Shown: positions 4,446 to 40,299, counted from the stretch's first letter. The stretch is 64,000 nt of DNA from Azolla caroliniana (GCA_043228905.1 JBHGNT010000018.1:13206001-13270000), one strand, 5' to 3'. Notes: generated from the letters alone by a model not told the origin. Numbers and translations: made by a program.

Positions 4446-4489
<44 letters not shown>

Positions 4490-6084
4490 TGCAAGGAGTT
4501 GTATCAGCTGTAACCGCTTGTTGGCAAAGAAATAGAGCTCAAGGTCGTTGCCCCTGAGTTGTACCCTTCCTCTCCCTATGGTGATCCTATTCAAAGTCTA
4601 TGAACTCCCATGGTTTTGCCTCAAGAGGTTTTCCACGCTAACACATAGTGTCATCCCATTCCTGTGTAAATGTATCAATATCTACCTTTTGTGTTGTTTC
4701 TTCCATTGTACATTTGGATCTCGGTTGTGGCCGAGAACGATTCCTTACAAATTGCTATCAGAGTGAAGTTCTAAACTTCAAACAAAACAAAGTAATATGG
4801 AAGATTCAGTTGTAGGAGTTGGAGGCATGTTCTAGCTCATCGACTCCAAGTACTCAATGTGGAAGTCGAAGATGAGGGACATGCTAGTGGTCAAAGATCT
4901 CTAGTTGCCGGTACAGTTTGGAAATAAAAGAATGGATAAGATTGATATCATGACCTAGGAGGTAATGCACTTAAAGACGACAACATACATAAGATGCTTC
5001 ATTGACATGAGCGTTTACAACAACTTCAATGAAGAGAACAAGGCTCATGAACTCTGGGAGAAGATTGACATTATGTTGGAGAACAAGAATGTCGTGAATC
5101 GAGTCTTAGTATTTCGAAAAATTGTGAGGCTCAGGTATCAGGACGGCTCCAGTATGATGGAGCATATGAACATCTTCCAAGCGTTAATAAACCTGACTAC
5201 CTCGTTGGAAGTACCTCTAGTCGATTAGGTACTGGCATTGTTGTTGCTCAGATCCCTTCCGGATAGCTGGGAGACGCTGGTTGTCTCACTCGGCAACACC
5301 GGACCAGAAGGGAAGCCCTTATCCCTTCAAGAGTAAAATCGAGCTTGTTGGATGAGGAAGCTCGTCGGAAGGACGAGGCAATTTCTGACCCAAAGGCCCT
5401 AGTCACGGAAAGTGATACACATAGAGGGAGAGGCCGAAACACAAGTCAAGGACAAGGTGAAGTCAAGGGGGAGACCCACGTGCTTTTACCGTAGGAAGTC
5501 GGGGCACTTCAAGAAGAATTTCCAACACTTCCGAAAGGAAAGGGGGGGAGTCGACAATGCTGACTTGAAGAAGAGTTCCAACCAAAAGGGTACATCGGCA
5601 ATCACGACAAGTGAGGAGCAGTTGTTTCTCATGAATGAGCAAAACGAAGTGACAAATCGACAAATTGACATAGGTAGTCGATTCAGGTGCGTCGTTCCAC
5701 CTGATCCCCAATAGAAAGTGTTTCTCATCCTTGTTGGCGACAAATCGACATAGGTAGTCGATTCGGGTGCGTCGTTCCACCTGATCCCCCATAGAAAGTG
5801 TTTCTCATCCTACAAAGCGGGAGATCATGGCCTTGTAAGGATGGGAAATGAAGGTGCATGCCGAATTGTTGGCATCAGATATGTGTGCTTGGTAACGTCG
5901 ATTGGGTGTCAATTGGTACTAAAAGATGTCTGACACATTCCAAAGGTTCAACTGAACCTGATATAAGTCGGTCAGTTGGATGATGATGCCTACACGGGTA
6001 GCATCCGGAACGTTGTCATGAAATTCAGCAAAGGAAACAGAACTTCGTGACCTTCATAGATGACCACAGGTAGCGATGGGCCCA

Positions 6085-6325
6085 GTTCGGTTTCGGTTCG
6101 GTTCGGTTTTTTGGCCTTGAAACCAAACCAAACCACTTATTAAGAAAAAAAACCCAACCAAACCGTTTGAACATTTTGAAGCCATTTAAACCAAACCATT
6201 TTGAACCAAACCATTTAAGTCAAACCGTTTAGGAACAATTTAGAACCAAACCAAAGCATTTATGAAAAAATGAGAACCAAACCAAACCATTTACGAAAAA
6301 ACCAAAACCAAACCAAACCAAACCA
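6085..6325. repeat. hAT subterminal repeat array (ggttc / aaaccaaacc), transposase-3' end
   Basis: Dense run of ttcggtt and aaaccaaacc/aaaccg motifs directly inside the TIR, like the transposase-binding subterminal repeats of Ac-type elements. Confidence 0.8.
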
Positions 6326-6978
6326 CTTTAAGAAAATGTAACAAAAGACATTGCAACATCTAAACTAGAACCAGAGATTCATTAGACATAATAAACATAA
6401 GTAGAGGTTAGATAAACAAAACAAATTAGAGAAAGAAAAACAGAAATTTAGACATTTTAAATGTTTTTTGAAGAAGAATACCATAATAAACAGAAATTTT
6501 CTCATATTAAAGTTTTGTGGAGAATGTATAGATAATACACAAAAAACTAAAAGTTTTTTGGAATGAAATCCTAGAGCTTATGACCAACAATCGATCATAT
6601 AGAGTTCACATCAACATTTAAGTTTGTATCCACCATTTACAACAAAGTCAAAAATATAAGAAAAATGTGAAAAACCTCCACATAAACTAATGCTTCTCTT
6701 TTAGTTTCCAATGTTTACTTTCAGCTTGAATTACGGATTCCTGGAAGTATAAAATATGTAAAAGAATTAATTAGTAATAATAAAATAAAAACAAATTCGT
6801 AAAAGTATGCACTAAGAAATTACAATGTCTTCAAGGATCTCCAATTGCAACTTGCATTTCATGGACTTGTGAAAAAGTATCATGATTCTTGTACCATGTA
6901 CATATAAAAAACATCAAATAAGTAAAAAACTAGTAATGAAAAATAAACTTAAAGAATGAATTAAAAGGTATGCACACC

Positions 6979-9025
6979 TTATCTCCCATGATTATCACGT
7001 AACATGTAATCTATTACCTCGTCTTCACCAACAAGATCATCTAGATTAAATTTTAGTTCTTCATAAGCCATGTGAAAGTTATCTGTTATCTGAACATGCA
7101 TCCATGATCGAATACACATTTCGGCCTTGAATGTGCATGAATGTAGTTTGATCCTATCATCAAAGGTCATTTTTGTTGCTGAATTTGCCTCTTCAATAGG
7201 TACTGATGATGCTAGTATAGCAAGGTAATCACATGCCATCCTATACAGTTGTGGCATTGCAGATTTATTATCATGCCACCCTTGTAAGGGATCCTTGTCT
7301 ATGCTAGCTAAAGGAAGTCTTATGAACTGCTCAATTTCTGATCGTGAATCAGAAACAAGACTTTTATTGTGTACACCCATTAACCTCCAAATTTTAGAGT
7401 TATTATCAATAGGTTGTATTGTGGTTGAAGGTGGCTCAACACCACTCGAGAATGAGTGGTAATGGGACTCAATCATGCCTTCAACCAGCTTAATATCCAA
7501 CTCTCTTTCGATATGGTCATTTGGAATAGGCAATCTATAAAGGAATGAAAAATATTATTAAAATCAAATAAAATATCAGAAAGCATGAAGACAATTGTAA
7601 AACTTAAAGGAAAGTATTACCTAGGATCAAGAAACATTGCAATGCGTGATGGAATAGACTTTAACGATTCTTGATACTTAATTAAATATTGTAAGCAATT
7701 CTCAAACGCTTTTTGAAGCACCTCTTGTGTGAATCTAGATGATCCCGAAAGTGAAGAATCTAGAAACTGATTACAATGATTAAGTAAACAATTATAAGCT
7801 AGTGATGCTAGTGATAATGTAGGATATATTGATCCTCCTAGAAAGGTAGAAACCTCTGCAGGTGTTTCTAACCATTCCTCCATAGCATGTATGTGACTCC
7901 AATCTTCTACGGTCAAGACATAACCATTGAAATCACTTGAAATTGTTAGATCTGAAATTGTAAAATTCAATATAACTCTATCCTTGATAGCTTGCCTAAA
8001 CATCTCCAAAGAAGAATTCCATCTTGTAACAACATCAAGCCTTGGAGGTTCCTTTTCATGATGTTCAACCATCATAGCATACTTCCTATGAACTTCCCTT
8101 CGAACCTTGCTAGATCTAATAGTTTGGAGCGTTGTTCTCAACTTTTCCTTTGAGGGTGAGATAATCTCTAATGCTGACTTGATGCCCAATTGAAAAGTGT
8201 GCACCATACACCTTAACATGTGTGAGGGAGCTAAAATTTCCTTACCATGTTCATTTTGTAACAACATGCTCAATTCCTTTGCAGCCAATTGTGCATCACT
8301 AGCTCCATCAAAAATTGTAGTTAATAATCGACTTGAAATATTAAAAGATCCAAGTCGATAAAAGAGGGCATGTGCACAACATTTCCTTGATCCAACACTT
8401 GGAAATACATGCACAAAATCCAATAGCAATGAAGTGTCACTGAGTAGAAGCCCTTTAGACTACTATTTGACCATGAACCATCAAAAGTAATAGAAAATCT
8501 TGATTGACTTTTTGATAACAAATCTATCTCTTGATGGCACAACACCACATACATTTCTAAGATGGAACGTTTAATCATGTGCCTTGTCTTCATCTGATAT
8601 CCAGGTACAAGATGGTGTACGAACTCTTTAAATGCATCTGATTCCACATGTGCATGGGGCAAAGTTCCCTTGACAATATACTTCATGACAAAACAATCAA
8701 TTTTCTTCTCTAAAACACGAGATACTCTAGTAGACTCTATAGAAGATTGAATAATCTTTGAAATACCTGAATTTTGATTTGGTTCGTTTGATAGATGATG
8801 CTTTTCCATTAAATGCTTAGTTATAGTACTTGTGGATGTTGTTGAAGACCAACAAACATGGCAATGATGGCATCGTCGTCGAGGTGTGCCATTATCCATA
8901 TAAGATATGATGTGAGCATCTGTCCATGATGTACGTTGCCTTTTTCTTGACATGCTTGTTTGCCCATGGCTAACATTAATTGATGATGAGTCCATTGTTG
9001 CATGAGTTTGAGAAGATGACTCCAT
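6979..9025 (-). pseudogene. hAT (Ac-like) transposase with BED zinc finger and C-terminal dimerisation domain; frameshifted
   Basis: BED finger W..H...CHHC...HLMEKH; FSITFDG(S)W; RCMVHTFQL (CxxH); DVVTRWNS; YPTLS; AMFLDPR; WHDNKSAMPQLYRMACDYLAILASSVPIE. GT-AG intron 7620-7535 joins in frame. A deletion/frameshift at ~8430 lies between VTLH and LLDF. Splice acceptor tttatag at 9038-9039, just upstream of the ATG. Confidence 0.92.
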
Positions 9026-9653
9026 TTAATGTTGTCCCTATAAAACATAAAAAAAGAAAGCATAGTTATGTATATAATACACATATTTTATCCATAAGAT
9101 AGTAACTACCATGACTATGACTCATATATGCATGATTGCATCCTCTTATTAATTAAAATGGTCATATTGCATACACACATCTACCACATATTCTTTATCA
9201 CACCCTATAAGCCATGTGCATGCATGTTCATATCAAATTGGGAAGTAGGAATAACTAACTTCCTCTTGATGAATTTGTTTAGTGTTGAAAATTGGCAACA
9301 GAACATAATAGGAATACATGGTTTAGATAATCAAAATAGACTACCTCCTTTTGCATAGGCAACCAGGACCATACTAACATAAGGCTATGCCATTAATAGC
9401 AATAGTAAACAGCATTGTATGTACTGAGCAAATACAATGCAAACAAGTTAAAAAGCTCACAAAAACTATTAGATTCGAATGATCTCAAGCAAGAGAAAAG
9501 ATGCACAAGTAGAGGCAACACCAATATATACAATCAAACTAGGGAATTATATACTATATAAGCCATTTTTAAAACATTCCTAAAGAATCCATGATAAGCT
9601 TTCGATTCTTTCAATCTTTGATTTTTGAGAAGTGAAATACCACTAAAGAATAT

Positions 9654-12600
9654 TGTAAAGAATCAAGAGATGGATTCTTGTGAAGCGGAAGAGATATGAG
9701 TTATGTGTGTGTATGATAGAGAGTGAGTGAGTGAGAGAGACAAGGAATACGACATAGAGAATACGCAAGGTAAAAGTATATTAACAAAGGAGAAAGACTC
9801 AACTAAATACAAGGTGGGAGGAGAGTGCTTTATATAGTCACCCTCTCTCTTCATTAACTACAAGACTCATGGAGCATGGGGAATGTGAAAGCTCATAAGT
9901 TATGTGTCATAGAATATGATTCTATGACTCATACTAAATGCTAGAATACAAAGAGGTGACATAATGGTGACTCTTGACCGTTGGAGTGTCTATTCACTCT
10001 CAAGGTGAGTTCACACACTAGACCAAGTTGAGCTTGATTCTCAACATGCCCCCTGAAGCTCAAGCCGGGTCGGTTTCAGAAGGTATCCGAAATCCGCTTC
10101 GACTCGCGTTCCGAAGTCCGTGTCGACTCGCATTTATGTGGAGTTGCGGAATCCGTGCTCCAGCTTGCGTTGTGCGTAGTTGCGAAGTCTGTGCTTCGGC
10201 TTGCGTCTTCCTTCGCGGCTTTGCGCGGTAGACTGACTCTTCGTGGCTTCGTTGCGTGGTTGTGTAATCCACGCGTTATTGTGTAGTGTGCTCGGTTTGC
10301 GGAATCCACGCGTTATTGCGTAATGTCTTCAGTACTCCCCCTCAAGCTTGGCAGCTCAGGGATCGTCAATTCGAGATTGGTCATGAATTGCCATAGCTTG
10401 TCGGCTCCTAAGGCTTTAGTGAAGATGTCGGCCGTTTGAAGATTGGTGCTAATATGTTGTAGGTCGACATTGCCAGCTAGAACGCGCTCTCGGATGAAGT
10501 GATAGTGCACTTCGATGTGCTTTGTCCGCGCGCGGAACACCGGGTTCCGAGCCAGATAGATACTGCTCATGTTGTCGCAGTAAAGGGAAGTTGGATCCTT
10601 GATGGGTACGCCCAGATCCTTGAGTATTCTTTTGAGCCATACAGCTTCACATGCGGCCACTACCGCGCCCCTGTATTCTGCCTCTGTGCTCGAAAGAGCG
10701 ACGGTTGGTTGCTTTTTGCTGCTCCAGGATATTGCTCCGTTGCCGAGGGAGAAAACAAATACGGAGGTTGATCTTCTATCATCTTTGTAGCCGACCCAAT
10801 CGACGTATGTGTACCCCTCGAGTCGTATTGGCATCGCGGTCTTGTAGAGGATGCCACAATCCATTGTGCCTCTCATGTATCGTAGAACTCGCTTAACGCA
10901 ATCCAAGTGAGTATCACGCGGTGTTTGCATGAATTGACTAAGGAGACCGATTGGATAACTGAGATCAGGTCAAGTGATCGTGAGGTAGATGAGACTCCCG
11001 ATGAGTTGTCGATACTGAGTCGGCTCACACGCTTTGGTGCCAGAGTTCGCATCTAGTTTGAGATTACGATCGAGCGGGGTTGCCATGGATTTGCACTTAG
11101 CCATACCGAACTTGTATAACAAGTTGAGGATGTAGTGTTGTTGAGAGATCATGATTCCGGCCGGAGTCCGAATTACCTCGATGCCGAGGAAGTAGTGGAG
11201 CTCCTTCATGTCCGTCATCTCGAACTTGTCGGAAAGGAGGGATTTGACCTTACTGATTTCGACGAGATGCTCACCTCCAATGACTAGGTCATCCACATAT
11301 AAGATGATGACGATCGGACTAGCGGAATCACTTCGTATGTAGAGGTAGTTGTCCGATTTTGACATACGGAAGCCGATTTGATGAAGATATGGCGTTATCT
11401 TCGAATGCCAAGCATGCGGTGCTTGCTTGAGGCCGTAGAGAGGCTTCTTGAGTCGGCATACAGCTTTCGGATGGGTGCTCGAGTTGAAGCTGGGTAGTTG
11501 TATCATGTACACCTCCTCTTCTAATTCGCCTTGTAGAAAGGCGTTCTTGACGTCCATTTGATGGAGGTGCCACCCTTTCGCCACGCCAAGCGCAATTACG
11601 GTCCGTACCGTCATCATCTTTGCCACCGAGGCAAAGGTTTCTTCGTAGTGGACGCCATGCGTCTGAGCGTATCCTTTCGCTATGAGTCACGCTTTGTAGC
11701 GGTTGATGGAACCGTCAGCGTTGTACTTCACTTTGTAAATCCATCTGCATCCAATCGCTTTTTTGTGCGGTGAGGTGGGAACGAGATCCCATGTCTCGTT
11801 CTTGCGTAGTGCCTGCATCTCCTTGTTCATGGCTTCAATCCATCGCGGATCCTTGGCTGCTTAGGAAAAAGTTTCCGGCTCGCGTACTGTCGCCACCTTC
11901 ATCATAAAGGCGTAATGGTACGCCATATAATCGTTGTAGCTGAATCGGCTTATGGGGTTCTTTTCACGGGTGGATCGGCGGAGCTTTTCATTTGCAAAGA
12001 TGAGGGCTTTCTTAGCTCCGATTGGTACCTCGAAACCGCCGAACTCATTGTCGAGTGAGTGAGTCGACTCATCATCGTCGAAGCGATCGTCTTCGTATTC
12101 CGCCATTTTCGACTTGCCTTTGTCCATCTTTAGGCTAGGCCGTGATGTGCTTTGATCGCTCAAAGGCTCTTGTGGTCCGCTCAGTCGGGTCGTGATCGGA
12201 CTTTCTTCGAACATGCGTGTAAGGCAATCTTTATTCTGTATCTCTTGTTCGGCAGATTCCGGGTCGAGCTGAGTCGGAGTCGGAGTTGTCTCTGGTGCGT
12301 ACCAGGATACGGACTCGTCAAAAACGACGTCTCGACTTACTCGAGATTTTCGAGTTGAAGGGTTGTAGCACTTGTAGGTCCCTTTTGCTCCAGTGAGTAT
12401 CCTACAAGGATACATTTCTCCAACTTCGGGTCAAGCTTTTGACGCTTCTCGTCGGGGATGTGCACGTACGCTATCGCGCCGAATATCCGGGTGTGCGATA
12501 AGTCCGGCTTCTTTCCAAAGTATTTTTTGGGTGGAGGGACCTCGTGCATGCCGAATGTTGTGCATCAATTCATTAGGTAGACGGCTGTATTTGCATCTTC

Positions 12601-15183
12601 GGCCCAATATGACTTGGGCATATGCTTCTCGTTCATCATGGCCCACGCTACTTCGAGGATGTGCCGATTTTTGCACTCGGCTACTCCGTTTTGTTGCGGA
12701 GTGTGTCGGCAAGTGAATTCTTGCCAAATTCCTTCCTTTCGGAGATACGCCGTGAAATCGTCCGAGAAGTACTCCTTGCCGCCATCTGATCGAAGACAAC
12801 GTACATGTCGGCCCGTGGCTTTCTCGACTTCATTCTTGAATGTTTGGAAGTGTCCGAACACTTCGCTCTTTTGCTGAATCGGATAGATCCAAGTGTGCCT
12901 AGAAAAGTCGTCAATGAAGAACACGTAATATCGGCATCTGCCGAATGTAGCCGTCTGCACCGGTCCCCATACGTCGGAATGGACTACGTCGAGTAGACCT
13001 TTGCTCACGTTCCGCTCTTTCGGGAATGGGTGTCGGTGTTGCTTGCCGAATTGGCACGCTTCGCATACACCTTCAATCTCCTTCTCTTTGAATGTCGAGA
13101 GTCCGATGACGACTCTATTCGATTTCATTGCTTTGAGTTTGTTGAGATTGATGTGGCCGATTCACTTGTGCCATAACTCTATGTCGGAGTCGGATTTCGT
13201 GCTTTTCGCGAACATGGCGGATTTCATCTCGTGTGAATCGAGAATGAACATCCGGCCCTCTCTTCTTCCGCGTGTGATGATTCGGCCTTCGTTTTCGATG
13301 AAACACCCTTCTTGGTCGAATCGTACTTGCATCCCTTGCTCAACAATTTGGCCGACCGAGACCAAATTCTTCGTGATGGTGGGAACATGCAAGACATTTT
13401 TAATGTATGTTTGCTTACCTCTTTCGCCGAATGGAACATTGCCGATGTGCCGAATCGGGTGCATAGTATCATCTCCGGTTTCGACATAACCGGGTCGCTC
13501 CGGCTCTCGAAGTTCGAGAAACCATTCTTTATGGGATGTCATATGGTTTGAGGCTCCGGATTCAACAAACCATATGTCCTCCGAATTGAGGGCACTAGTT
13601 GAGGTAGAGGCCGACATAGAGTTTGCTCTATGTTTCATCATGAACATTCCGCCATGGTCAGAGTTGTGTGCATACATTCCGCCACAATCTTTGTAGTCGA
13701 AGTTGTTCTCGTACATTCCGCTATAATCTTTGTAGTCGGAATTGTGTCCATAATTCGTGAGTTGTTGGCTTGTGGAAGCCGATTCACGCATCTTCTTTTG
13801 GCACTCTTCTTCGTGGTAGCCGAGCTTTCCACAATATCCGCATTCGGTTGCGTTTTGACGGCTTGGGCCGGAGTGGAAGCTCCCCCTTCTTGCGAAGGTT
13901 CCTCGTTGGCTTCCGTTTTACGGCCGAAATTGGGAGTTGTTATCGTAGGTCGGACCTCATCCGCCTTGTCCTTGGCCGAATCGGCCTCTCAACCATCTGT
14001 GTCCTCTTCCTTCGTTCGAGTGCGTGTAGAGCATGTGGCCTTCCGACTCATTTCTCCTTGTACGCATGTGGTTTTCTTCGACCAATAGCATTGATTGGAG
14101 CTCGAAGAAGGAGGGAGATTTCTCCCGTGCTAGAACGGCGGTTCACATCGCGCCGAACCGTGGTGCGAGGCCGCCGAGGCATATTTGAACCATCTCATCA
14201 TCATCGATATTTACGCTTATTGAGCCAAGCGAATTGCAAAGCTCCTTGATCTTCGAGGTGTATGTCGTGATGGACATGTCCCTTTGTTGAATGTTGTTCA
14301 ACTCTTGGCGGAGTTGAAGCCTTCTTACGGTTGTGTTCGCCGCGAAAATCTTTCGTAGATTTTCCCATGCCTCCTTCGGCGTCTTGGCTTCACGAATGTA
14401 GCCAAGAATGTGATCGTGAACACATGTCACCAAGCAATACATCACGCGGCTTGCGGCTTGCTCCCATGTCGCGTATTTGGGAGCCGCTTCGGCGGGTCGG
14501 TCTTCATGTGCTCCTTTGATGTAGCTCCAATAGCCTTGTCCGACAAGGTATTGGTGCATCTTGTACTCCCAAGATGCGAAGTTGTTTCGATCCAACTTCT
14601 CGGTAGGGAGAGCGCTCCCCATTTGAGTATTCATTATGTCGATTCTTCTTCTTCTTCTCTCTTCGAATGCGAGCTATGTAGCGAAGCTACGATAGCGATG
14701 CGCCGATCCTTGGTCATTGGCGTGGAGCACCACACACGACCACGATGAGGCGAATGGGCTAGATCGAGCTACCAAATCGCTCTGATACCATGTAAAGAAT
14801 CAAGAGACGGATTCTTGTGAAGCGGAAGAGATATGAGTTATGTGTGTGTATGATAGAGAGAGAGTGAGTGAGAGAGACAAGGAATACGACACAGAGAATA
14901 AGCAAGGTAAAAGTATATTAACAAAGGAGAAAGACTCAACTAAATACAAGGTGGGAGGAGGGTGCTTTATATAGTCACCCTCTCTTTTCATTAACTACAA
15001 GACTCATGGAGCATGGGGAATGTGAAAGCTCATAAGTTATGTGTCATAGAATATGATTCTATGACTCATACTAAATGCGAGAATACAAAGAGGTGACATA
15101 GTGGTGACTCTTGACCGTTGGAGTGTCTATTCACTCTCAAGGTGAGTTCACACACTAGACCAAGTTGAGCTTGATTCTCAACA
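9654..15183 (-). mobile_element. Full-length Ty1/copia element nested in the hAT (LTRs 9654-10046 and 14791-15183)
   Basis: 393-bp LTRs differing at about 8 sites by eye. TSD aatat (9649-9653 / 15184-15188). PBS tggtatcagagc (14779-14790, tRNA-iMet) and PPT after 10046. gag-PR-INT-RT-RH order. Confidence 0.95.
10313..14634 (-). pseudogene. Copia gag-pol polyprotein, disrupted by several stops and frameshifts
   Basis: ORF pieces: gag (LDRNNFASW), protease (WFVESGASNHM), integrase (VHSDVWGP, RSDGGKEY, QQNGVAE), RT (QMDVKNAFL, LYVDDL), RNase H (ADIFTKAL). Confidence 0.92.
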
Positions 15184-26945: not shown

Positions 26946-26982
26946 TCTTCTTCCATTCTTCTTACATAATAATATATATATA

Positions 26983-28727: not shown

Positions 28728-28803
<76 letters not shown>

Positions 28804-30273
28804 ACATAAACTCTATTAAAAAATAACACTTTGTAACTTTGTGTACATAGAATGTGCTCAAAGAGCACTTTTATACAAGGGTACTTCAATGCGCATACGA
28901 GCGTCTGTCACTGACTCCCAAAAATATGCCTACGTATTAGGTTGGATCCGTAGGTCTCTAACGGCCTACCGGTTTCAATCCGATCCGGCTCCTAGTTCCG
29001 GATATCATCCGGACACCGATCTAGTTCTCCGTTCCGGATACCGATCCGCCGATCCAGATTTGGTTGAGCTTGCTCGCTCAACACTCCCCCTCAAGCTCAA
29101 CTTGAGTTCGGATCGTGGTGTCAGTTTCTATAGTAGCCGGTCCTTCCATCCGGCTCCTTCTAGCATTGTTCCGCCTTGCTCGTGCTCCTCGTCCGGTCCA
29201 GTTTTGCTTCCTGCGATCCTTCTGGTTCCACGCACCTCGACCTCCTCGGTCGGCTTTTCTGCTCAGTAGGCCCATCTCAGCTCCTTTGCTGCTATGACTT
29301 CGGCGCTTGTCGACCCATTGGTTCCTCCGTTTCGGTGTCGACTTCCGCTACCTTCTCGTCCGCTTGGCCTTTAGTTGATCCGGCTCTTCCGAATCCAACT
29401 GTTGAACCGAATTGGCTTCCTCCGATTCATTCCAGCTCTTGTCCGAGTTGGTAGTCTCCAACTCGTCTTCCGTTTTTAGGCCCTTCACCACATCGGACCA
29501 CGTTCAAGTCTTGGCCTTCTTCTGGTCGACTCTATCCTTCTTGACTCAGCTGCCATTGCCGCTTGCTCCGACTTGTTTGGATGAGCCAACTCCTTCGGTC
29601 GGCTCGGCTTTCTTTATCTGCCCATCTCTCCCCTTGGTTCTTCCTTCCTTTCTAGTTCCTTGTCCGGTGCCATCTGTTTCCGTTCTTGTTCTCCCCCTCA
29701 AGTGCGGCACATTGAGATGTTGAATGCCGAGCATGTCTGAAAAATGTTGCAACTTGTCCGATCCGAGTGGCTTGGTGAAGATGTCGGCAACCTACCGATC
29801 CGTGTGAACATACCGACGTTCAACTTCACCGCTCAGGATCCGCTCACGAACAAAGTGATAATGCATTTCTATGTGCTTTGTCCAAGCATGGAATACAGGG
29901 TTCTTGGCGAGTTGTATGTTGCTTACGTTGTCATAGTAGATCAGGATTGGGGTCGGCACCTCGATCCGGAGGTCACGCAACAGTCGCCGAAGCTAGATGG
30001 CTTCACAAGTGGCAATTGTAGCGCCCCGGTATTCAGCCTCAATGCTCGATAGAGCCACTGTTGGCTGCTTTTTGTTGCTCCACACAATAGCCGCGCTACC
30101 AAGAGAAAACATTTAACCGGATGTGGATCGGCGGTCCGATGCATCACTAGCCTAGTCAACATCTGTTTATCTGACTAGCTCTTCAGCTATATTGTGTCGG
30201 TATAAGAATCCTCGGTCCTGCTCACGTATCGTAACAGTCGATGCGCGCACTGAAGGTGCTCCATAGTTGGATT

Positions 30274-33200
30274 TGTTGGGATTTCGGTCCCTCCGGATGG
30301 GATGTCCGGAGATGAATGACGGCAAGCCCGGTTGCGGTTACGGAACCGGATGATGAAGACCCCGGTTACGGAACCGGATGATGAAGACCCCGGTTACGGA
30401 GCCGGATGATGAAGACCCCGGTTACGGAACCGGATGATGAAGACCCCGGTTACGGAACCGGATGATGAATGTACCCGGAGAGAGATCCGGATGCGGAGAC
30501 ATATTTGTGAATATGTTTGCCAAGAGCCCTTGAGGCTATATTTGTAAATAGCCCGAAAGTCATATGTGTATAAATATGACTTAGGGCAAACAGTTTTATG
30601 TCGTTGCTCATTTTTCATGAGAAGTGAGAGCAGCCGAGAGAGAGAGTGAGAGACGAAGAGGTCGTTGCCTCTGTGTAATACCGCCGCCTGTGGCGAGGAC
30701 AGCGAGCTCAAGGTTGTTGCCTTGTAGCCTCACCATTGTACATCTCTGTGTATAGTGATAGTTGGAGTTAGAGGACTCCCGTGGTTTTTTCCCATTTAGG
30801 GTTTTCCACGTAAACATCCTGTGTGCTCTTCTCTCTGTTGTTCTTCGTGCATTCTTGTATTTCCCGTTTTCTGCGAATCGATCCTGTTCCTCGGTTGTGG
30901 CCGAGCACGGAATTGCAACAAATTGGTATCAGAGCGACGGTAACACAGAAAATGGAAGGCGCCGGTAGTGGGCCTCCGGGCATGATGGTGCTGAATGCGC
31001 AGAATTACGCCGACTGGAAGATCAAGATGGAGGATCTTCTGATTGTTCGGGACCTGTACGAACCGATTGACAGGTCGGAAATACCGAAGGGGGTACTTGA
31101 GTCGGAGTGGAAGCTCCTGAACCGGAAAGCCGTAGCGACGATCCGACAATATGTCGATGTAAGCGTTCTACAGCATGTGGCGAACGACACCAACGCATAT
31201 GAGATGTGGCGGAAGCTGTCGGGCCTCTATGAGAGGAAGAATGCGTTGAACCGGACCTCCCTGATGAGGAAGATAGTGAACCTCAAGTACCGGGACGACG
31301 AGAGTATGGTGGAACACGTAAGCACGTTCATGGGATTCGTGAACCAGCTTGCGGCGATCAAGTTCCCGTTGGAGGATGCAATGCAAGCCATCATCCTGAT
31401 GTGTACATTGCCGGACAGCTGGGAGAACTTGGTGGTGACTCTCAGCACCTCCTGCACCGAAGATAACTTGTCTCTACAAACGGTAAAGACAAGTATTTTG
31501 AACGAAGAAGCGCGTCGGAGAGATAAAGAACCGGTCTCCGACTCGAAGGTGCTGCTTACCGAATCGGAACGGGGAAGACAGTGGAACCGGAGTCCGCAAA
31601 GACGGGAGAAGTTGGGGACCCGGTCGCAGTCAAGAGGAAGGCCAACATGCTTCCACTGTGGGAAGCCGGGGCACTTCCGGAAGAATTGTCGGCATTACCG
31701 AAAGGACAACGGAGCCGACGACACCGATTCGAAGAAGTCACCGGAGAGAAACGGTGCATACCGGGGAGCCACGGACCGGAGAGGTCCGGATCGGCGAGGG
31801 CAGGACCGGAAAGGAACAACGGCACTCGCGGCAAGTGAGGAAGAAATCATGCTCATCACCGAAGAATGTGAACTAAACGTAGCCGGCGATGAGACGACCT
31901 GGGTGGTCGATTCCGGAGCATCGTTCCACCTGACCCCGGAGAGAAGATACTTCTCATCCTACACAGCCGGTGAGCATGGCTGTGTTCGGATGGGGAATGA
32001 AGGTACGTGCCGGATTGCCGGCATAGGAGACGTGTGGTTGACAACCCCGACCGGATGCAAAATGCTGCTGAAGGATGTTCGACACGTTCCGGAGGTTCGA
32101 TTGAACCTGATTTCGGCCGGGAGGCTAGACGATGAAGGCTACACGGGTAGCATCCGGAACGGTGTCATGAAGTTCAGCAAAGGGAGCCTGATAGTGGCTC
32201 GGGCCCGGAAGGTCAACACCCTGTACCTGATGAATTCCCGGCTCTGTCCGGAGGAGCTGAACGTGGCAGCCGACACTGCCGGTGAGCTGTGGCACAAGAG
32301 ACTGTGCCACATGAGTGAGAAGGGGATGAAGAGGCTTGCAGAAGACAACCTTATTCCAGTGAAGCATGTGCACCTGGAGAAGTGCACCGACTGCCTGGCC
32401 GGTAAGCAAAACCGGACCTCCTTCCACTCAAGGCCACCGATGAGACGTAGCGCACCATTGGAGCTGGTGCACACTGATGTGTGTCAGGTAGAAACGAAGT
32501 CACATGGCGGAGCCCAGTACTTTGTGACATTCATTGATGACCACAGCCGGAAGCTGTGGACGGCACCGTTGAAGACAAAGGACCAAGTGTTGTCCGTCTT
32601 CAAAGAACTCCACGCGAGAGTGGAAAGGGAATCCGGCAAGAAGCTGAAAGCGATACGAGCGGATAACGGAGGGGAATACCGGGGGCAGTTCCAGGAGTAC
32701 TGTCGCTCGAAGGGAATCCGGCTCGAGTTTACTGTGCCGAAGACGCCGGAACTGAACGGGCTGGCCGAGAGGATGAACCGGACCATAATGGAGAGGGTCC
32801 GGAGTATGCTGGCGCATGCGAAATTACCCAAGGGGTTTTGGGCTGAGGCGATGTCGACGGCGACATACGTGATAAACAGATCACCCTCAGTACCTTTGGA
32901 CGGAGACACGCCGCAGAGAGTGTGGACCGGTAGGGAAGTATCCTACCGGCATCTGAAGGTGTTCGGGTGTCTCGCATACGTGCATGTGGCAAAGGACCGG
33001 AGAGGAAAGCTAGATCCAAAGACCCGGCCATGCATATTCCTCGGTTACGGTGACGACGAGTTCGGCTACCGAGTATGGGACCCGGTCGACAAGAAGATAT
33101 TCAGGAGTCGAGACATCATCTTCATGGAGGACAAGACACTCGCCGACTGGGAGTCGGAGAAGAAGATGAAGAGCTCAAAGTCGACCGGTGAGGATCAACT

Positions 33201-35657
33201 CTACGAGGAGCAGTCCCGACCGGCAAGGGACCGGTTAGCACTCGAGGATCCGGCCGAAGACGGTGAAGAAACAGAACCGGCCGAAGAAGATGAAAATGAT
33301 ACCGGAACCGGCCCCGATCCCGAAATGGATTCCGATGAAGAAGAAGAATCGGAAGAACCGGTTACCGAAGCTCCCGAACAGAGATATCCTCTAAGAGAGA
33401 GAAGGGCCCCCCGGAGATTTCCGGAACCAGAGCACGTGCTGCTAACAGACGAGGGGGAGCCGGAAAGTTTTGAAGAAGCAAAACATGACACCCAGAGCCG
33501 CAGGTGGTTGAGTGCCATGCAGGACGAGATGGATTCCCTGCATGAGAATCACACATATGAACTTGTGGAGTTGCCGAAAGGAAAGCGGGCACTTCGAAAC
33601 AAGTGGGTGTTCAAGCTGAAACCGGGAGATGCCGGAAACCCCCCGAGATACAAAGCCAGGATCGTGGTGAAGGGGTTTCAGCAAAAGAAGGGCGTCGACT
33701 TCGACGAGATATTTGCCCCGGTAGTGAAGATGACCTCCATCCGGACGGTGCTGAGCATAGCAGCAAGCATGGACCTCGAGGTAGAACAGATGGACGTGAA
33801 GACGGCATTCCTTCACGGTGACCTCGAAGAAGAGATCTACATGCAGCAACCGGAAGGATTCGAGAAGAAAGGGAAGGAGCACCTGGTATGCCGGTTGAAG
33901 AAGAGCCTTTACGGACTGAAGCAGGCTCCCCGGCAATGGTACCGGAAGTTCGACTCCTTCATGACCGACGAAGGGTACCACAAAACGCAGTCTGATCACT
34001 GCGTGTTTGTGAAGAAGTTTGAAGGAGGAGACTCTCTAATACTCCTCCTGTACGTGGACGACATGTTGATCGTCGGACGGGACCAGGTCAAGATACGGAT
34101 GCTGAAGAAGGCTCTTCACCGAACCTTCTCAATGAAGGACTTGGGCCCGGCGAGACAAATACTAGGGATGCACATCATCCGGAACCGGAGCAAGAAGCAG
34201 TTGTGGCTGTCACAGGAAAAGTACGTGACAAAGGTGCTTAAACGGTTCAACATGTCGGAAGCAAGACCGGTCGGATCGACCCTCCCGGCAAACTGCAAGT
34301 TGTCCAGCAAGCAAAGCCCCAAGACAAAGGCTGAGAAGGAGGACATGATGAAAGTACCATATGCCTCTGCTGTCGGAAGCTTGATGTACGCAATGGTGTG
34401 TACAAGACCAGACATTGGATACGCAGTCGGAGTGGTGAGCCGGTACATGAGCAATCCCGGCAAAGAGCATTGGAACGCGGTCAAGTGGATACTCCGATAC
34501 CTGAAGGGCACGGCAAACGTGTGCCTCCGATTCGGCTCCGGTAAGCCTGAACTCGACGGCTTCACCGATTCGGATATGTCGGCTGATGCAGATACCAGCC
34601 GGTCCACATCAGGGTATGTGATGACCTATGCAGGGGGAGCCGTTTCGTGGCAGTCGAGGCTGCAGAAGACGGTTGCGTTGTCAACCACGGAGGCGGAGTA
34701 CATGGCAGCTGTTGAAGCCGGCAAGGAAATAATATGGATGAAGGACTTCATTAGAGAGCTCGGTATCCAGCAGGAGGAGTACCGACTCTACTGCGACAGT
34801 CAGAGTGCCATCCACCTTGCGAAGAATGCGGCTTATCACTCCCGGACGAAGCACATCCAGCGAAGATATCACTGGATCCGGGAAAGGATAGAAGACAAGG
34901 AGTTCGAGCTGACGAAGGTCCACACGGACGAGAACGGGTCAGATATGCTGACCAAGGTGCTCACACCCGACAAGCTGGAAGCATGCCGGAAGAGGATCGG
35001 ACTGGAGAGACATCCCATGCCGAAGTGAAGGGGGAGTTTGTTGGGATTTCGGTCCCTCCGGATGGGATGTCCGGAGATGAATGACGGCAAGCCCGGTTGC
35101 GGTTACGGAACCGGATGATGAAGACCCCGGTTACGGAGCCGGATGATGAAGACCCCGGTTACGGAACCGGATGATGAAGACCCCGGTTACGGAACCGGAT
35201 GATGAATGTACCCGGAGAGAGATCCGGATGCGGAGACATATTTGTGAATATGTTTGCCAAGAGCCCTTGAGGCTATATTTGTAAATAGCCCGAAAGTCAT
35301 ATGTGTATAAATATGACTTAGGGCAAACAGTTTTATGTCGTTGCTCATTTTTCATGAGAAGTGAGAGCAGCCGAGAGAGAGAGTGAGAGACGAAGAGGTC
35401 GTTGCCTCTGTGTAATACCGCCGCCTGTGGCGAGGACAGCGAGCTCAAGGTTGTTGCCTTGTAGCCTCACCATTGTACATCTCTGTGTATAGTGATAGTT
35501 GGAGTTAGAGGACTCCCGTGGTTTTTTCCCATTTAGGGTTTTCCACGTAAACATCCTGTGTGCTCTTCTCTCTGTTGTTCTTCGTGCATTCTTGTATTTC
35601 CCGTTTTCTGCGAATCGATCCTGTTCCTCGGTTGTGGCCGAGCACGGAATTGCAACA
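30274..35657 (+). mobile_element. Very young, intact Ty1/copia element (LTRs 30274-30920 and 35039-35657)
   Basis: TSD ggatt (30269-30273 / 35658-35662). PBS tggtatcagagc and PPT agggggag. LTRs appear identical apart from one 28-bp repeat unit. Single intact ORF. Confidence 0.97.
30952..35028 (+). CDS. Copia gag-pol polyprotein (~1358 aa from the first ATG after the PBS)
   Basis: gag with zinc knuckle CFHCGKPGHFRKNC, protease WVVDSGAS, integrase HTD...IDD...DNGGEY...NGLAER, RT QMDVKTAFL/YVDD, RNase H TDSD...AEY...SDMLTK. No stops. Confidence 0.96.
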   Translation: MEGAGSGPPGMMVLNAQNYADWKIKMEDLLIVRDLYEPIDRSEIPKGVLESEWKLLNRKAVATIRQYVDVSVLQHVANDTNAYEMWRKLSGLYERKNALNRTSLMRKIVNLKYRDDESMVEHVSTFMGFVNQLAAIKFPLEDAMQAIILMCTLPDSWENLVVTLSTSCTEDNLSLQTVKTSILNEEARRRDKEPVSDSKVLLTESERGRQWNRSPQRREKLGTRSQSRGRPTCFHCGKPGHFRKNCRHYRKDNGADDTDSKKSPERNGAYRGATDRRGPDRRGQDRKGTTALAASEEEIMLITEECELNVAGDETTWVVDSGASFHLTPERRYFSSYTAGEHGCVRMGNEGTCRIAGIGDVWLTTPTGCKMLLKDVRHVPEVRLNLISAGRLDDEGYTGSIRNGVMKFSKGSLIVARARKVNTLYLMNSRLCPEELNVAADTAGELWHKRLCHMSEKGMKRLAEDNLIPVKHVHLEKCTDCLAGKQNRTSFHSRPPMRRSAPLELVHTDVCQVETKSHGGAQYFVTFIDDHSRKLWTAPLKTKDQVLSVFKELHARVERESGKKLKAIRADNGGEYRGQFQEYCRSKGIRLEFTVPKTPELNGLAERMNRTIMERVRSMLAHAKLPKGFWAEAMSTATYVINRSPSVPLDGDTPQRVWTGREVSYRHLKVFGCLAYVHVAKDRRGKLDPKTRPCIFLGYGDDEFGYRVWDPVDKKIFRSRDIIFMEDKTLADWESEKKMKSSKSTGEDQLYEEQSRPARDRLALEDPAEDGEETEPAEEDENDTGTGPDPEMDSDEEEESEEPVTEAPEQRYPLRERRAPRRFPEPEHVLLTDEGEPESFEEAKHDTQSRRWLSAMQDEMDSLHENHTYELVELPKGKRALRNKWVFKLKPGDAGNPPRYKARIVVKGFQQKKGVDFDEIFAPVVKMTSIRTVLSIAASMDLEVEQMDVKTAFLHGDLEEEIYMQQPEGFEKKGKEHLVCRLKKSLYGLKQAPRQWYRKFDSFMTDEGYHKTQSDHCVFVKKFEGGDSLILLLYVDDMLIVGRDQVKIRMLKKALHRTFSMKDLGPARQILGMHIIRNRSKKQLWLSQEKYVTKVLKRFNMSEARPVGSTLPANCKLSSKQSPKTKAEKEDMMKVPYASAVGSLMYAMVCTRPDIGYAVGVVSRYMSNPGKEHWNAVKWILRYLKGTANVCLRFGSGKPELDGFTDSDMSADADTSRSTSGYVMTYAGGAVSWQSRLQKTVALSTTEAEYMAAVEAGKEIIWMKDFIRELGIQQEEYRLYCDSQSAIHLAKNAAYHSRTKHIQRRYHWIRERIEDKEFELTKVHTDENGSDMLTKVLTPDKLEACRKRIGLERHPMPK

Positions 35658-37229
35658 GGATTCTCCATAAATTGGTTGATCACCCCGACTGGATAACTGA
35701 TGTTGGGTCGGGTGATCATCAAGTATATAAGGCTTCTGACAATTTGTCGGAACCGTTTCTCATTGCAGGCCGGTCTGGAGTCGGGACGTAGCTTCAGGTT
35801 CCGGTCCAGGGGTGTGGAGATCGGTCGGCATTCCGTCATGCCGGACTTGTACAACATATTCAACACATAGTGTCTTTGTGAGAGCAATATGCCATCAGGG
35901 GTTCGGATCACCCCGATCCCAATAAAATAATGAAGGTCCCCTAGGTCCTTCATTTCAAATGCGCCTGATAGCTGGGACTTCACTCTACTGATTTCCTCCA
36001 GTCCGGGTTCAGTGATGACTAAATCATCAACATATAGCAGGATACAGACCGGACTGTCTGGACCTTTCCAGATGAATAGTGACGAGTCAGAATTTGAGGC
36101 CGCAAAACCCATTTTATGCAACCGGTGCATGATCTTCACATTCCAAGCCGGGGGGGCTTGCTTCAGACCGTAAAGCGACTTCTTGAGTTGGCACACTGCC
36201 GACTTGTTCATCTGTGATTGGAAACCGGGGGGTTGGATCATATAGACCCATTCTTCAAGGTTACCTTGAAGAAACACATTCTTCACGTCCATTTGGTGAA
36301 GATGCCATCCCCTTGTTGCATCAACAACCAATACCACACGAATCATTGTCATCGCTACCGGAGCGAAGGTCTTGTCGTAGTCGATTCCGTGGGTCTGTGT
36401 GTATCCCTTTGCCACTAACCAGGCCTTGTATTGGTTGACTGAACCGTCAACGTTCTACTTTACCTTGTATACCCATTTGCAACCGATCGGTTTACACTAT
36501 CAGGGAGGGTCAACCAGGTCCCATGTGTCGTTGGTATCAAGTGCCCGCATTTCTTCCTCCATAGCAACACGCCAATTTGCGTCTTTTGCTGCATCTATGT
36601 CGCTCTCCGGCTCACGCACTTCCGCCACCTTAGTCATGTACGCATAATGATGTGCCATGTACTCATTGTACCCGTACCTTATGACGATTTTCTTCTGACG
36701 GGTTGACCAACGTAGCTTTTCGTTACCCGGTTTGAGACCCTTCTTGGCTGGTTCGTGCTTCATTTCTAAAGATCCGCCTATTCCCTTTCCCGGGTTAGAT
36801 TCGCTCCGATTCGACCCTTCATTGCCGGTATCGTATTCTAGCATCTTCTTCTTTCCCTTCTCTTTGCGCGTGAACCGTCTCCTTGGTTCCTTGCGCGGGG
36901 AGAGAACGACAGAGTCTCCACTACTCGTCGGTTCTTCATCCGACTGGTCATCCCGACTCAGTCGTGCATTCGGTCCATTTAGCCGGAATGAGATCGGACT
37001 CTCATCTAGAGTACCAAATCCTTCATCTTCTTCTTGAACCTCTCCGGGCTCAAACTTCACACTCACATAACTTGACATTTAGTTGTCTGTTTCAAATGTA
37101 GTAAAGTGCATTCGGAAGCTCTTGAAGACATCCATCTTTTCGTACCAAGATATTAAACTAATATAAAATAGTATCTTCACTATTATTGTTTCATATTGTG
37201 TGTGAAGAACCGCACTTAATTTTGTACAT

Positions 37230-37560
37230 TCCATGCAATTTTCACACCGTTGCCGAAAATCTTCACGACATCCACCCCCACTAAACCGCACGTCCTCTGG
37301 TACATGCCAAGAAGAGAGAGTGTGAGATTTCGGCTACAGTGATTAGTACGATTCCTCCATTTCAAGCATGTCCATTCCCTTCACTTGAACCATTGTCGCC
37401 ACCCAATCCACCATATCATTCGCTCATTCTTTGTTTTACCATGACCAGTTGTCATGGGGTTGTCATGGCCCCTTGTTCTCCTTCCGAACATAACTGTTTA
37501 GGTTTTATGCATGTTCCACCTTTGTCCCGATCATCTCCTTTTGATGAAACTCGAAATTTG
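37230..37560 (-). mobile_element. Gypsy LTR-end/PPT remnant related to the element at 40300-42253
   Basis: cttcacgacatccacccccactaaaccgcac matches cttcacgacatccacccccaccaaaccacac at ~41217-41250. Confidence 0.55.
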
Positions 37561-38469
37561 ATTTTAGAGAGGAAGAGTTATGTTAAAAAGCAAAAACCCC
37601 AGGGAATCATAACTGATTTACTCTCTTTTCTGGTGTATTAATTGGAATAGTGTCGGAGCTCTATGTATGACTTTTAGAGATGAATAAACTTAAATTTCTC
37701 CTGGGTTGAGGGCTTACTTTACATTAATTATCAATAAAAGAAATACTGAGAAGCACAAACCTTTGAAGGTCAACATGGTGTCAAATTCTTTGTGCAATAG
37801 AAATCTAGCTCTCTGGATGTGGAATTAAGTCATTAGTTAATATTAAATTGTAAGGAAATCTTTATTTAGAAAACTACACCAATGGTGAGATAAGCACAAT
37901 CAGTGTTTCAATTGTGATTTTACAGCTCTCTGAGGTTCCCTAGGCCAGTCGTAGATGAATCACATTAAACGAAATGGTTGGCATATATGTAACAAGAGAA
38001 AACCAAATCATCAATAAGTATCTAGAGAGGAATCAACTTTTACTCAGACTAAACCATGCTCATCTCTCTATATATACCAGGAGAAAACCAAAATCTTCGT
38101 ATTTGTATAATGAAAGTCTAGTATACATTCAAAACATAACCAAACCAAAATTCTCCCTCGACATATACCACGAGGAAATTCAAAGCTTCTCACTTATTAG
38201 ACTATTGAAGAGTGTCTCATACACATTCAGAACCTTAAATGAACCCAAAATAGTCGATCAATACATACCTATGTAACGTGTTATAGTAGATTGTAGAATG
38301 TAGTAGGAACTTTGAAGAGGACTAAGGAGTTAGGAGTTAGGAGTTAGGATGAGGACCGAGGTAGCGCAGGAGAGAGTATGTACTGTAGTCTATGAAGCCG
38401 TGTAGAAGAGAGAGTCAGGAGGCAAGAGTCAATACTTAGAATTTAGGATTGGATTATTATTTTTAAATC

Positions 38470-38640
38470 TAAAAACCTAAAAACCAAACCTTTAAACTGA
38501 AACCGATAAACTGATAAGCCTTTAAACCGCTAACTCCAAAAACCGAACCGAATCGTATACTATGAAACCAAACCAAACTAATTATTTAACTTTAAACCGA
38601 TAAACCATTAAGCCACGACTTAGCGGTTCGGTGAGCTAAA
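38470..38640. repeat. hAT subterminal repeat array (aaaccg/aaacca), transposase-5' end
   Basis: Multiple aaaccg, aaacca and gaaccg motifs immediately inside the right TIR. Confidence 0.8.
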
Positions 38641-40299
38641 ACCGGGCCCATTGCTAACCACAGCTGGAAGTTGTGGGTCTCCATGTTGAAGACGAAGGAC
38701 CAGGTATTTTCTGTCTTCAAGGAGCTTCATGCGAGAGTCAAGAGAGAAACCAGCCGGAAGTTAAAGGCAGTTCAAGACGACAACCGAGGTGAATACCGAG
38801 GGTAGTTCGGGAAGTGCTACCGGTCGAAGGGAATTCTGCTCAAATACACCGTGTTGAAGATGCCAAAGCTGAATGAGCTGGCCAAGAGGATGAACTGGAC
38901 CATTATGGTGAGGGTCTGAAGTATGCTTGCACATGCTGAGTTGTCCAAGAAGTTTTGGGTTGAGGCGCTGATGACAATGACGTATGTGATAAACATATCA
39001 CCCTCAGCACCCTTGGACGAAGATATACCATAGAGAGTGTGGACTAGCAAGGACGTTTCATATTGGCATTTGAAGGTGTTCGGTTGTCTTGCCTATGTAC
39101 ATATCGCAAAGGACAAACGGGGAAAACTAGACCCAGAAACTCGGAGATGACGAATTCGGCTACCGACTGTGGGACTTAATCGACAAGAAGGTCGTTCGAA
39201 GCCGAGACATAGTCTTCATGGATAAAAAGACTATTGTTGACTGGGTGTTAGAGAAGATCACATCTTCCCGAACAGTCAGAAGTCTACAACCGACTAAAGA
39301 ACATGGAGAGTCAATTGAATTCAAGTCCACAGTTGGGAGTCGGAGGTCAGTCGGGTGTCAGAGTCAGACACAGAGTCGGATCCAACGAAGACGAAGAAGG
39401 ACCAACTCCGACTCGGATGAAGAACTAACTAAAGAAGTTGAAGAGGAGCCGACTGTATTGGCCAGGGAGAGAAGATATCCCCTTAGAGAGAGAAGGCCCC
39501 CCAAAGATTTCTGAATGAAGAGAATGTATTGCTGATCGACGAAGGGGAGTCGAAGAGCTTCGAGGAAGCAAAGAGGGACACCCACAACCGCAAGTGGTTA
39601 AGTTCCATGGAGGACGAAATGGATTCCCTGCATGAGAACCACACATACGAATTGACAGAGCTACCGAAAGGAAAGAAGGCGCTTTGAAACAAGTGGGTAT
39701 ACAAGTTGAAACCGAGAGACGCCAGAAATCCACCAAGGTATAAAGCCGGCAACGTGATGAAGGGATTCTAGCAGAAGAAAGGAGTAGATTTCAATGAGAT
39801 CTTTGCCCCGGTAGTGAAGATGACATCCATCCGGATAGTGTTGAGCATAGCGGCAAGCATGGACCTCGAAGTCGAGTAATTAGATGTCAAGATTGCCTTC
39901 TTGCACGATGACCCTGAGAAGGACATCTACATGCAGCAACCGAAAGGATTCATCAGGAAAGGGAAGGAGAACCTAGTGTGCTGGTTGAAGAAGAGCTTAT
40001 ATGGACTGAAGCAATATCCCTGGCAATGGTACTGAAAGTTCGACTGCTTTATGAAGGACCACGGGTAGCACAAGACGTAGGCCGACCACAACGTGTTCGT
40101 GAAGAAGTTTGACGGAGGAGACTTCCTAATACTCTTGCTGTATGTGGACGACCTGTTGATCGTCGGACAAGACCATATCAAAATCCGGATACTTAAGAAG
40201 GCCTTGAGCAAGTCTTTCTCGATGAAAGATATGGGTCCAGCAAGACAGATTTTGGCGATGCACGAAGAAGCTATTGTGGTTGTCACAAGTGAAGTACGT

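Follow-up and report, generated by a model that had tools for sequence, protein, structure and literature searches.

Can a hAT transposon carry whole host genes from one place to another as a single large block? The question is raised by a 64,000-nucleotide stretch of the Azolla caroliniana genome (GCA_043228905.1 JBHGNT010000018.1:13206001-13270000; hereafter the window, to which all coordinates refer unless a locus is named), in which the two ends of a hAT element (6071 and 38656) enclose a transposase gene, exons of a glyoxalase II gene, a pentatricopeptide repeat (PPR) reading frame and several retrotransposons, and in which the whole block interrupts an old copia retrotransposon. The preliminary description of this locus took it for a giant hAT that had moved host genes together with its own transposase. 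The locus is probably better explained as a hAT copy of normally about 5 kb which inserted into an old copia and was swollen by later insertions and by copied host segments; the odds that these host segments were already aboard when the element landed are roughly even.

Ends of the element and site of insertion

The two terminal inverted repeats (TIRs) of 17 bp each (6071-6087 and 38640-38656) agree at 15 of 17 bases, and the two copies of the target-site duplication (TSD) of 8 bp, accacagg and accacagc, match at 7 of 8 positions, the target being seen once in related copias. Both features were recognised in the preliminary description, as were the subterminal AAACC arrays, which are found at both ends (Table 1). 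The TIR pattern at no more than 3 mismatches gives 3 matches in the 64-kb window against 0.33 expected by chance, while AAACCAAACC, for which 0.2 matches would be expected, occurs 9 times and never further than 260 bp from one of the two ends. TIRs of hAT elements are about 5-27 bp long with the consensus start YARNG; the left TIR starts with TAGCG and fits this consensus, and the right TIR starts with TAGCA and deviates at the fifth base.

Joined to each other after removal of the block and one 8-mer, the flanks give a gap-free alignment with three other copias (B and B2 of the window and the copia of locus L023), each of which reads A(C/T)CACAGC once at the junction position. Translation across the junction gives FVTFIDDH(R/S) followed by WKLWVSMLKTKDQVF. 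The duplication and the collinear flanks prove that both hAT ends entered the copia integrase together, in one insertion event with an 8-bp duplication of ACCACAGC, and not that the load was aboard. The proposed landing as one unit thus holds for the ends, but is not demonstrated for what lies between them. The stronger claim that host genes were moved is not borne out, as the TSD and the restored flank show only the insertion of the ends and none of the other loci compared carries this load.

The host copia has its own long terminal repeat (LTR) pair, at 4195-4749 and 49998-50502, with a Kimura two-parameter (K2P) distance of 0.16 and with CATCT on both sides, in agreement with the LTR pair and TSD described before. 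Its integrase, which had been described as restored to continuity, is collinear across the insertion but not intact, because about 325 bp (the equivalent of about 32188-32512 in copia B) is gone 33 bp to the left of the hAT (breakpoint 6037/6038) and stop codons stand in frame.

Members of the family and their usual size

Public metagenome contigs, scanned for the pattern of the 3'-type end, gave 34 loci, all from assemblies which also contain the PPR and glyoxalase segments of this fern lineage, and 35 public loci have the 17-mer TIR of the family at their ends. Each of the four species compared has the 3' subterminal sequence in great abundance, with a summed contig depth of 1,300-4,600 against about 16-28 for single contigs. 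Pairing of the family ends in these contigs, which the preliminary description had proposed as a check, yielded a perfect 8-bp TSD (GTGACAAT/GTGACAAT) in L042, whose ends are 823 bp apart, but the paired sizes reach only from 515 to 5,009 bp: further transposase-free members measure 515, 646 and 643 bp, and the transposase-bearing ones 4,929 bp (L047) and 5,009 bp (L023). From these sizes and the L042 duplication it follows that the family makes 8-bp TSDs and normally measures about 5 kb.

The closest relative, L041 (93-94% identical), matches 6071-9351, with this identity over 6422-9351, and then diverges sharply. L023, L024, L047 and L056 match the window only to 9045-9060, and the 5' ends of family members match 38458-38656 only. 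Family sequence in the element thereby amounts to 3,281 + 199 bp, and the other 29,106 bp (9352-38457) lies upstream of the transposase gene, between its promoter side and the 5' subterminal repeats. L023, L024, L041 and the window share no mutual similarity upstream of the transposase gene, and the corresponding stretches of L047 and L056 contain nothing matching in the window. As this upstream stretch is different in every family member compared, it appears to turn over frequently. The remainder of about 21.7 kb formerly regarded as a cargo-carrying hAT was correct in its subtraction of the nested copias, but only about 3.5 kb of it is family sequence and about 3.1 kb belongs to a third copia; it also holds a fragment resembling a long interspersed nuclear element (LINE), a small insertion and further repeat fragments. 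The third copia, the LINE-like fragment and the small insertion had not been counted. Demonstrably host-derived DNA makes up about 9.6 kb of the element.

L041:790-12846 extends for at least 12 kb from its 3' end without a 5' end, in a contig with a coverage of 15. The only Pfam match in its interior frames lies at 10905-11279 and is to part of a type B DNA polymerase of organellar/viral kind (DNA_pol_B_2, E 9e-12).

The transposase gene

Three minus-strand coding blocks (8992-8429, 8417-7602 and 7536-6991), searched piecewise, match hAT proteins of 508-785 amino acids (aa). Dimer_Tnp_hAT (PF05699) is present in 6979-7533(-) with an E value of 3.9e-13, and also in L041 and in the full-length relatives P0187, P0189, P0193 and P0200. 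These blocks and the domain confirm the presence of a hAT transposase inside the element, as had been proposed. A GT..AG intron of about 86 nt lies between blocks 2 and 3, and the same gap is seen between the two frames of L041, both of which are open. As to an RNase H-like catalytic core, the middle block has no match to the local Pfam copy; it aligns to the 508-785-aa hAT proteins at 31-38%, and the related protein P0331 carries the precomputed domains PF27041/PF27039 (ZBED1 RNase-like). A candidate for an N-terminal zinc finger of BED type is the pattern C-x2-C ... H-x4-H, read by eye in the region CHHCHVCW...KHLMEKHH, with no Pfam match above threshold.

A deletion of about 34 bp at 8427/8428 has shifted the frame relative to P0331, L041, L047 and L056. 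The joint of blocks 1 and 2 measures about 11 nt in the window and 28-45 nt across these four sequences, with 15 codons in P0331 (78-86% identical) and 28-34 nt more than the window in L041, L047 and L056. Since the reading frame changes at this joint, the transposase gene is broken and lacks the uninterrupted frame that an autonomous element would have. This copy is no longer able to mobilise itself.

Host-derived segments and the lone hAT end

The glyoxalase II exons, which were searched frame by frame, lie at about 17082-17260, 19781-19909, 20301-20492 and 20566-20640, with the domain HAGH_C in 20271-20495 (E 8.5e-21). No N-terminal metal-binding exon with the THHH motif was found upstream in the window. 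The claim of whole intron-containing genes is therefore right as to the introns of this piece but not as to its completeness, the metal-binding exons being absent. The segment is present in 18 public contigs. L010, which differs from the window by 1.4% where compared, follows the window to about 22215 and then passes into unrelated DNA without hAT motifs, and a 4.9-kb contig of species D departs from the window at 22152, with a further 2.4 kb unaligned. Organisms A and B each contain two variants of 21307-21931, one near-identical and the other about 90% alike, and two variants of the segment are also seen at 19379-19657. In the glyoxalase tree, copies with and without a 28-34-bp stretch at 19965 mix within species-level groups; because the low-coverage contigs are possibly mosaic, no dating is drawn from this tree.

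The PPR segment is found in L001-L004 at 95-97% identity to the window, and these four are 96-98% identical among themselves. The closest relatives of the PPR protein come from Adiantum and Ceratopteris (43-48% identity), which supports the fern genome presumed in the preliminary description. The PPR gene, then called intact, does have an open reading frame, but it is truncated in the E1 motif by a stop codon common to all five copies (L001, L002 and L003 have earlier stops too), is followed by no E2 or DYW part in any frame, and has ratios of nonsynonymous to synonymous divergence (dN/dS) between copies of 0.34-0.74. No RNA run on record contains the stretch, a result that is uninformative about expression.

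Both segments are found elsewhere in other surroundings and are thus duplicated host DNA, which upholds the host origin attributed to the glyoxalase II exons and the PPR gene. In the relatives the two segments are not neighbours, nor do they lie beside a hAT end. A junction of another kind is seen in L025:1-2332, which holds only the final 1.25 kb of the PPR segment: the last 640 bp of the PPR frame and the downstream DNA (24865-23613) are joined to an unrelated 189-aa frame of L-PSP/RidA type, so that L025 either shows the PPR segment in a third setting or is chimeric by assembly.

Between the two segments stands a lone truncated end of another family member, with a very high copy number in all four species; the 3' ends of nine loci match it at 84-95% identity. 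The glyoxalase segment ends about 20-40 bp from the inner edge of this lone end, a layout that would be expected if a hAT had taken up filler DNA beside its end. In Ds-like elements, filler occupies this same place. On the opposite side, the PPR-side homology of relatives begins 38-49 bp or 293 bp beyond the tip, the contigs of species D and E starting only at 22374-22385 or 22629. No partner for the lone end was found within the window, which contains no further end at up to 5 mismatches in the right direction, no second CTCTTGAG as a possible duplication and no subterminal-motif cluster elsewhere. A reading of 6071-22336 as an element complete in itself was dropped, as the left end and the lone end that would border it are both of the 3' type.

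Retrotransposons and other repeats in the filling

Copias A and B entered the hAT later than its own insertion and together account for 10,914 bp, in line with the two TSD-flanked nested copias of about 10.9 kb described before. Over 619 aligned positions no base distinguishes the two LTRs of copia B, which are set apart by a single repeat unit of 28-29 bp. The gag-pol frame of this copia, 1401 aa long, is uninterrupted and contains all expected domains; copia B is a very recent insertion. Copia C, in which copia B resides, has no integrase core, protease, gag or 5' LTR. The start of the small insertion at 23297-23612 resembles that of a copia LTR (TGTTGGGAAAAC... / TGTTGGGAAAACTGG...), and a TAATT duplication may flank it, while 23451-23495 within it has a very high copy number in all four species compared. 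Scans of the window with Rfam and for transfer RNA genes gave no match.

Table 1. Components of the hAT element and its host retrotransposon, in order along the window.
Feature	Position	Strand	Remarks
Host copia, 46.3 kb including nested content, integrase split by hAT	4195-50502	+	LTRs; CATCT/CATCT duplication
TSD, left copy, accacagg	6063-6070		Last base differs from target ACCACAGC as read in related copias
TIR at transposase-3' end, TAGCGATGGGCCCAGTT	6071-6087	+	2 bases off commonest family sequence TAGCAATGGGCNCGGTT
3'-type subterminal region, AAACC/CCAAACC array	6088-6330	+	74-94% identity to ends of many family members
hAT transposase pseudogene	6979-9025	-	Exon 1 9025-7621, intron ~7620-7535, exon 2 7534-6979
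Region upstream of transposase gene	9026-9351	-	93% shared with closest relative L041; family homology stops at 9351/9352
Non-family DNA, first stretch	9352-9653
Nested copia A, 5,530 bp	9654-15183	-	AATAT/AATAT; LTR K2P 0.021
Stretch between copia A and glyoxalase II exons	15189-16923		No upstream glyoxalase exon found there
Host segment with glyoxalase II fragment	16924-22215	+	Left limit not fixed; homology to other context ends at ~22215
Lone truncated 3'-type end of another family member	22236-22336	-	TIR TAACAATGGGCACGGTT at 22320-22336; tip points right
Moderately repeated sequence between lone end and PPR segment	22337-22628
Host segment with PPR gene and flanks	22629-26962	-	95-97% identical to contigs of related ferns
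Small insertion within PPR segment, 316 bp	23297-23612	+	Not present in relatives
PPR reading frame, 721 aa, PLS-type repeats	24225-26390	-	Ends inside E1 motif
Small repeat	27007-27248
LINE-like fragment, C-terminal zinc-binding part of reverse transcriptase	27750-28357	-	Weak: zf-RVT, E 0.019
(GA)n tract	~28740-28800
Copia C, 3' part: 3' LTR, polypurine tract ~29083-29095, RNase H end	28850-30273	-	Low-coordinate limit approximate
Nested copia B, 5,384 bp, inside copia C	30274-35657	+	GGATT/GGATT
Copia C remainder: reverse transcriptase and linker, 5' side cut off	35658-37339	-
Non-family DNA next to 5' end	37340-38457		No match in family members compared
5'-type subterminal region	38458-38639	-	72-84% identity to 5' ends of L023, L047, L042, L043 and others
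TIR at 5' end, TAGCAATGGGCCCGGTT (reverse complement of 38640-38656)	38640-38656	-	Identical to commonest family sequence
TSD, right copy, accacagc	38657-38664

Timing and origin of the load

The two LTRs of the host copia are 0.16 apart, against 0.021 in copia A and 0 in copia B, while the two glyoxalase variants in organism A differ by about 4-9% and the two PPR groups have a synonymous divergence (dS) of 0.056-0.06. Judged from these divergences, the duplications would fall between the insertion of the host copia and that of copia A, either before or after the landing of the hAT. None of the 59 other loci compared has the same internal junctions, the complete genome lying outside that search, and transport and acquisition on the spot therefore have about equal odds. 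Exact look-ups of frames from 38620-38730 (the right junction) and from 16978-17286 (the first glyoxalase exon) gave no match, which is uninformative either way.

The element may have been already loaded with the glyoxalase fragment, the PPR gene and other non-copia filling, to a total of 15-18 kb or more, when it entered the copia, a history to which we give a chance somewhat below even. It agrees with the outer ends, which form a proper 5'/3' pair with a single duplication, and L041, with at least 12 kb from a 3' end and no 5' end, suggests that there may be more than one large member. In maize, large unrelated inserts do not stop Ds elements from moving (PMC3260210), and a macrotransposon of up to 100 kb, cited there, can also move. 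The divergence of the segments (about 0.04-0.09 in non-coding DNA, dS 0.056-0.06 in the PPR gene) lies between 0.16 and 0.021 and allows capture before the landing, but the same brackets equally permit capture after it. Nor does any of the other loci compared repeat these junctions or this load. Moreover, the usual capture model, in which gap repair after excision is combined with a template switch (discussed in PMC3260210), rebuilds the element in place, so that the duplication is silent on the load, which may postdate the landing. The more specific proposal that a unit of 15-20 kb or more transposed into the copia, already carrying a translatable PPR gene, the glyoxalase II fragment and a piece of the other family member, is in our judgement rather unlikely; if true, it would make transposase-encoding fern hATs natural vehicles of large cargo which duplicate whole genes at the DNA level, with L041 as a second example.

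Alternatively, only a 5-kb element ever moved, and the host segments and repeats entered after the landing by nesting, by excision repair with template switches and by deletions; this history, too, is possible at slightly less than an even chance. Two of the inserts, copias A and B, are certainly later, the filling is a sharp-edged patchwork of fragments (a truncated copia, a lone hAT end and a LINE-like piece), and the same stretch differs in every family member examined, as expected from frequent turnover. Filler DNA and trapped sequences have also been described in Ds-like elements located in repetitive DNA (PMC3260210). However, stepwise filling would require an active family transposase at that time, and the roughly 15 kb of filler far exceeds that of Ds-like elements, whose modal length is about 1 kb.

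On the explanation favoured here, namely a normally 5-kb hAT swollen within an old copia, a hAT of the 5-kb family inserted by both ends into the integrase of the old copia with an 8-bp duplication. Its filling is a patchwork of a third, truncated copia, a LINE-like piece, small repeats and two segments copied from host loci. How and when these host segments got in is inferred: another family member may have taken up the glyoxalase segment as filler next to its end, and part of this member may have come to lie inside the element by nesting and deletion, or by a template switch between related elements during repair. Copias A and B entered later by ordinary retrotransposition. Since then a loss of 34 bp has put the transposase gene out of frame, and drift has altered 2 of the 17 bases of the left end.

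Several observations weigh against this explanation. A tree splitting the glyoxalase copies into an old element-borne group and a parental group was not obtained, and the source of 9352-9653, 15189-16923 and 37340-38457, as well as the left limit of the glyoxalase segment, is not established. Most of the paired ends in public contigs have no matching duplication, and these contigs come from assemblies at 1.3-2x coverage or with collapsed repeats and may be mosaics. The contig comparison of four runs spanned 19000-25000, short of both outer junctions. In addition, the lone end between the host segments could be the trace of an event which used the ends of two elements.

In such an event, the block would derive from the ends of two nearby family members at a donor locus, by macrotransposition or by reversed-ends transposition with re-replication. 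Three ends lie in the block, host-derived DNA stands directly outside the internal tip, and the borders carry an 8-bp duplication, as in maize composite insertions of 4-23 kb (Zhang et al. 2014, PMC4270019). The DNA to the right of this tip, from 22337 on, might represent the flank of a donor element. The internal end, however, is of the wrong type and polarity: it is of the 3' type with the polarity of a right end, points as the outer 5' end does, and is therefore not the 5' end needed by the transposase-bearing left part. This left part has no 5' end of its own, as family homology stops at 9351, and the right border consists of only about 200 bp of family sequence. For these reasons a two-element event fits poorly. 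The host segments, furthermore, are not neighbours in related species, and two border elements in direct orientation with host DNA between them, as in a macrotransposon, are not seen here. An origin of this kind is accordingly regarded as improbable.

An assembly error which joined unrelated pieces between the two ends might be suspected in a repeat-rich region with four or more related copias and with outer junctions beyond the stretch covered by the contig comparison, but it is very improbable, since the outer junctions fit one target site to the base, which a misjoin cannot produce, copias A and B have exact duplications, and independent runs of organisms A and B agree at 99% or more with 19.0-25.0 kb in many pieces (including 20291-20735, 21245-21642, 21616-21931 and 23462-24136).

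Comparison with known systems

Maize already offers examples both of gene capture and of large units bounded by hAT ends. Among its Ds and Ds-like elements, Ds2-22, Ds-l4-354 and the compound 7,344-bp Ds-l4-483 contain filler, captured fragments or trapped sequence (Du et al. 2011, PMC3260210). Maize hATs have captured intron-containing gene fragments from other chromosomes and contain nested LTR retrotransposons, and decaying copies of Ds-like elements prefer repetitive DNA (PMC3260210). The fern element resembles these Ds-like elements in having hAT ends with an 8-bp TSD, gene-derived DNA including introns from a donor located elsewhere, LTR retrotransposons inside and repetitive surroundings (PMC3260210). 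It differs from them in keeping a nearly full-length transposase gene beside the captured DNA, in the far larger size of its filling (29 kb, of which about 15 kb remains once the three copias are subtracted), in the complete open PPR frame and in its fern host. The transposase gene beside captured DNA, the size of the filling and the fern host are the less usual features of this locus.

Pack-TYPE elements, including Pack-hATs, likewise have TIRs and a TSD around fragments of host coding genes (transduplication; Gisby and Catoni 2022, PMC8903248), and such fragments do lie between the TIRs here. Pack-TYPE elements, however, are non-autonomous by definition (PMC8903248) and contain no transposase sequence, whereas a transposase pseudogene of about 2 kb is present in the fern element, whose internal junctions recur at none of the 59 loci compared. 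Because of this transposase match, the rules of packFinder would class the element as 'autonomous or derived from autonomous'.

In the Ac/Ds macrotransposon, as cited in PMC3260210, Ds forms one end and Ac the other of a unit of up to 100 kb that consists mostly of nested retrotransposons. As far as that citation describes such units, the fern element is similar to them in being very large and hAT-bounded, with nested retrotransposons and an 8-bp duplication, but its borders look like the two ends of one element, and its extra internal end has the wrong type and direction. Composite insertions (PMC4270019) also have transposon ends around many kilobases of duplicated host DNA, an 8-bp duplication and an internal junction. 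A composite insertion, however, comprises a whole element with its flanking DNA, whereas the transposase part here has no second end of its own, and two or more loci, not adjacent to each other, supplied the duplicated segments (compare PMC4270019).

As the evidence stands, the locus is a well-resolved example of three known processes: nesting and the taking up of host DNA have enlarged a 5-kb DNA transposon about sixfold, the upstream stretch of its family turns over in each copy examined, and duplicates of host genes made at the DNA level decay inside repeats. If the load did travel, a hAT would here, in nature and not in maize genetics, have taken an open gene together with gene fragments over long distances, and the locus would bear on gene duplication and shuffling in large fern genomes, including that of the very large PPR family. 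For annotation, caution is advisable: gene calls would be made for the glyoxalase exons and for the PPR frame of 721 aa despite their position in a transposon within a retrotransposon.

Surroundings of the element

Another member of the hAT family, 78% identical, abuts a related copia integrase in L023:5594-5776, a stretch compared with 6038-6070 and 38665-38784 of the window. The joint between hAT and copia lies there only 122 bp downstream of the site used in the window, after ...VDNG. This near-coincident insertion may reflect chance in a copia-rich genome or a target preference. The flanks in L023 give no matching duplication, and the contig may be a collapsed assembly.

The host copia itself sits in another copia-like element (3982-4189, 50508-52333 and 57188-57596), which is split at the CATCT duplication, is 73-79% related to the truncated copia C and contains a nested copia of its own at 52331-57102. 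Further nesting occurs within the host copia, where 40733-42253 holds a direct repeat pair of 91% identity about 1 kb apart and 43559-48847 is an LTR element with a K2P distance of 0.044.

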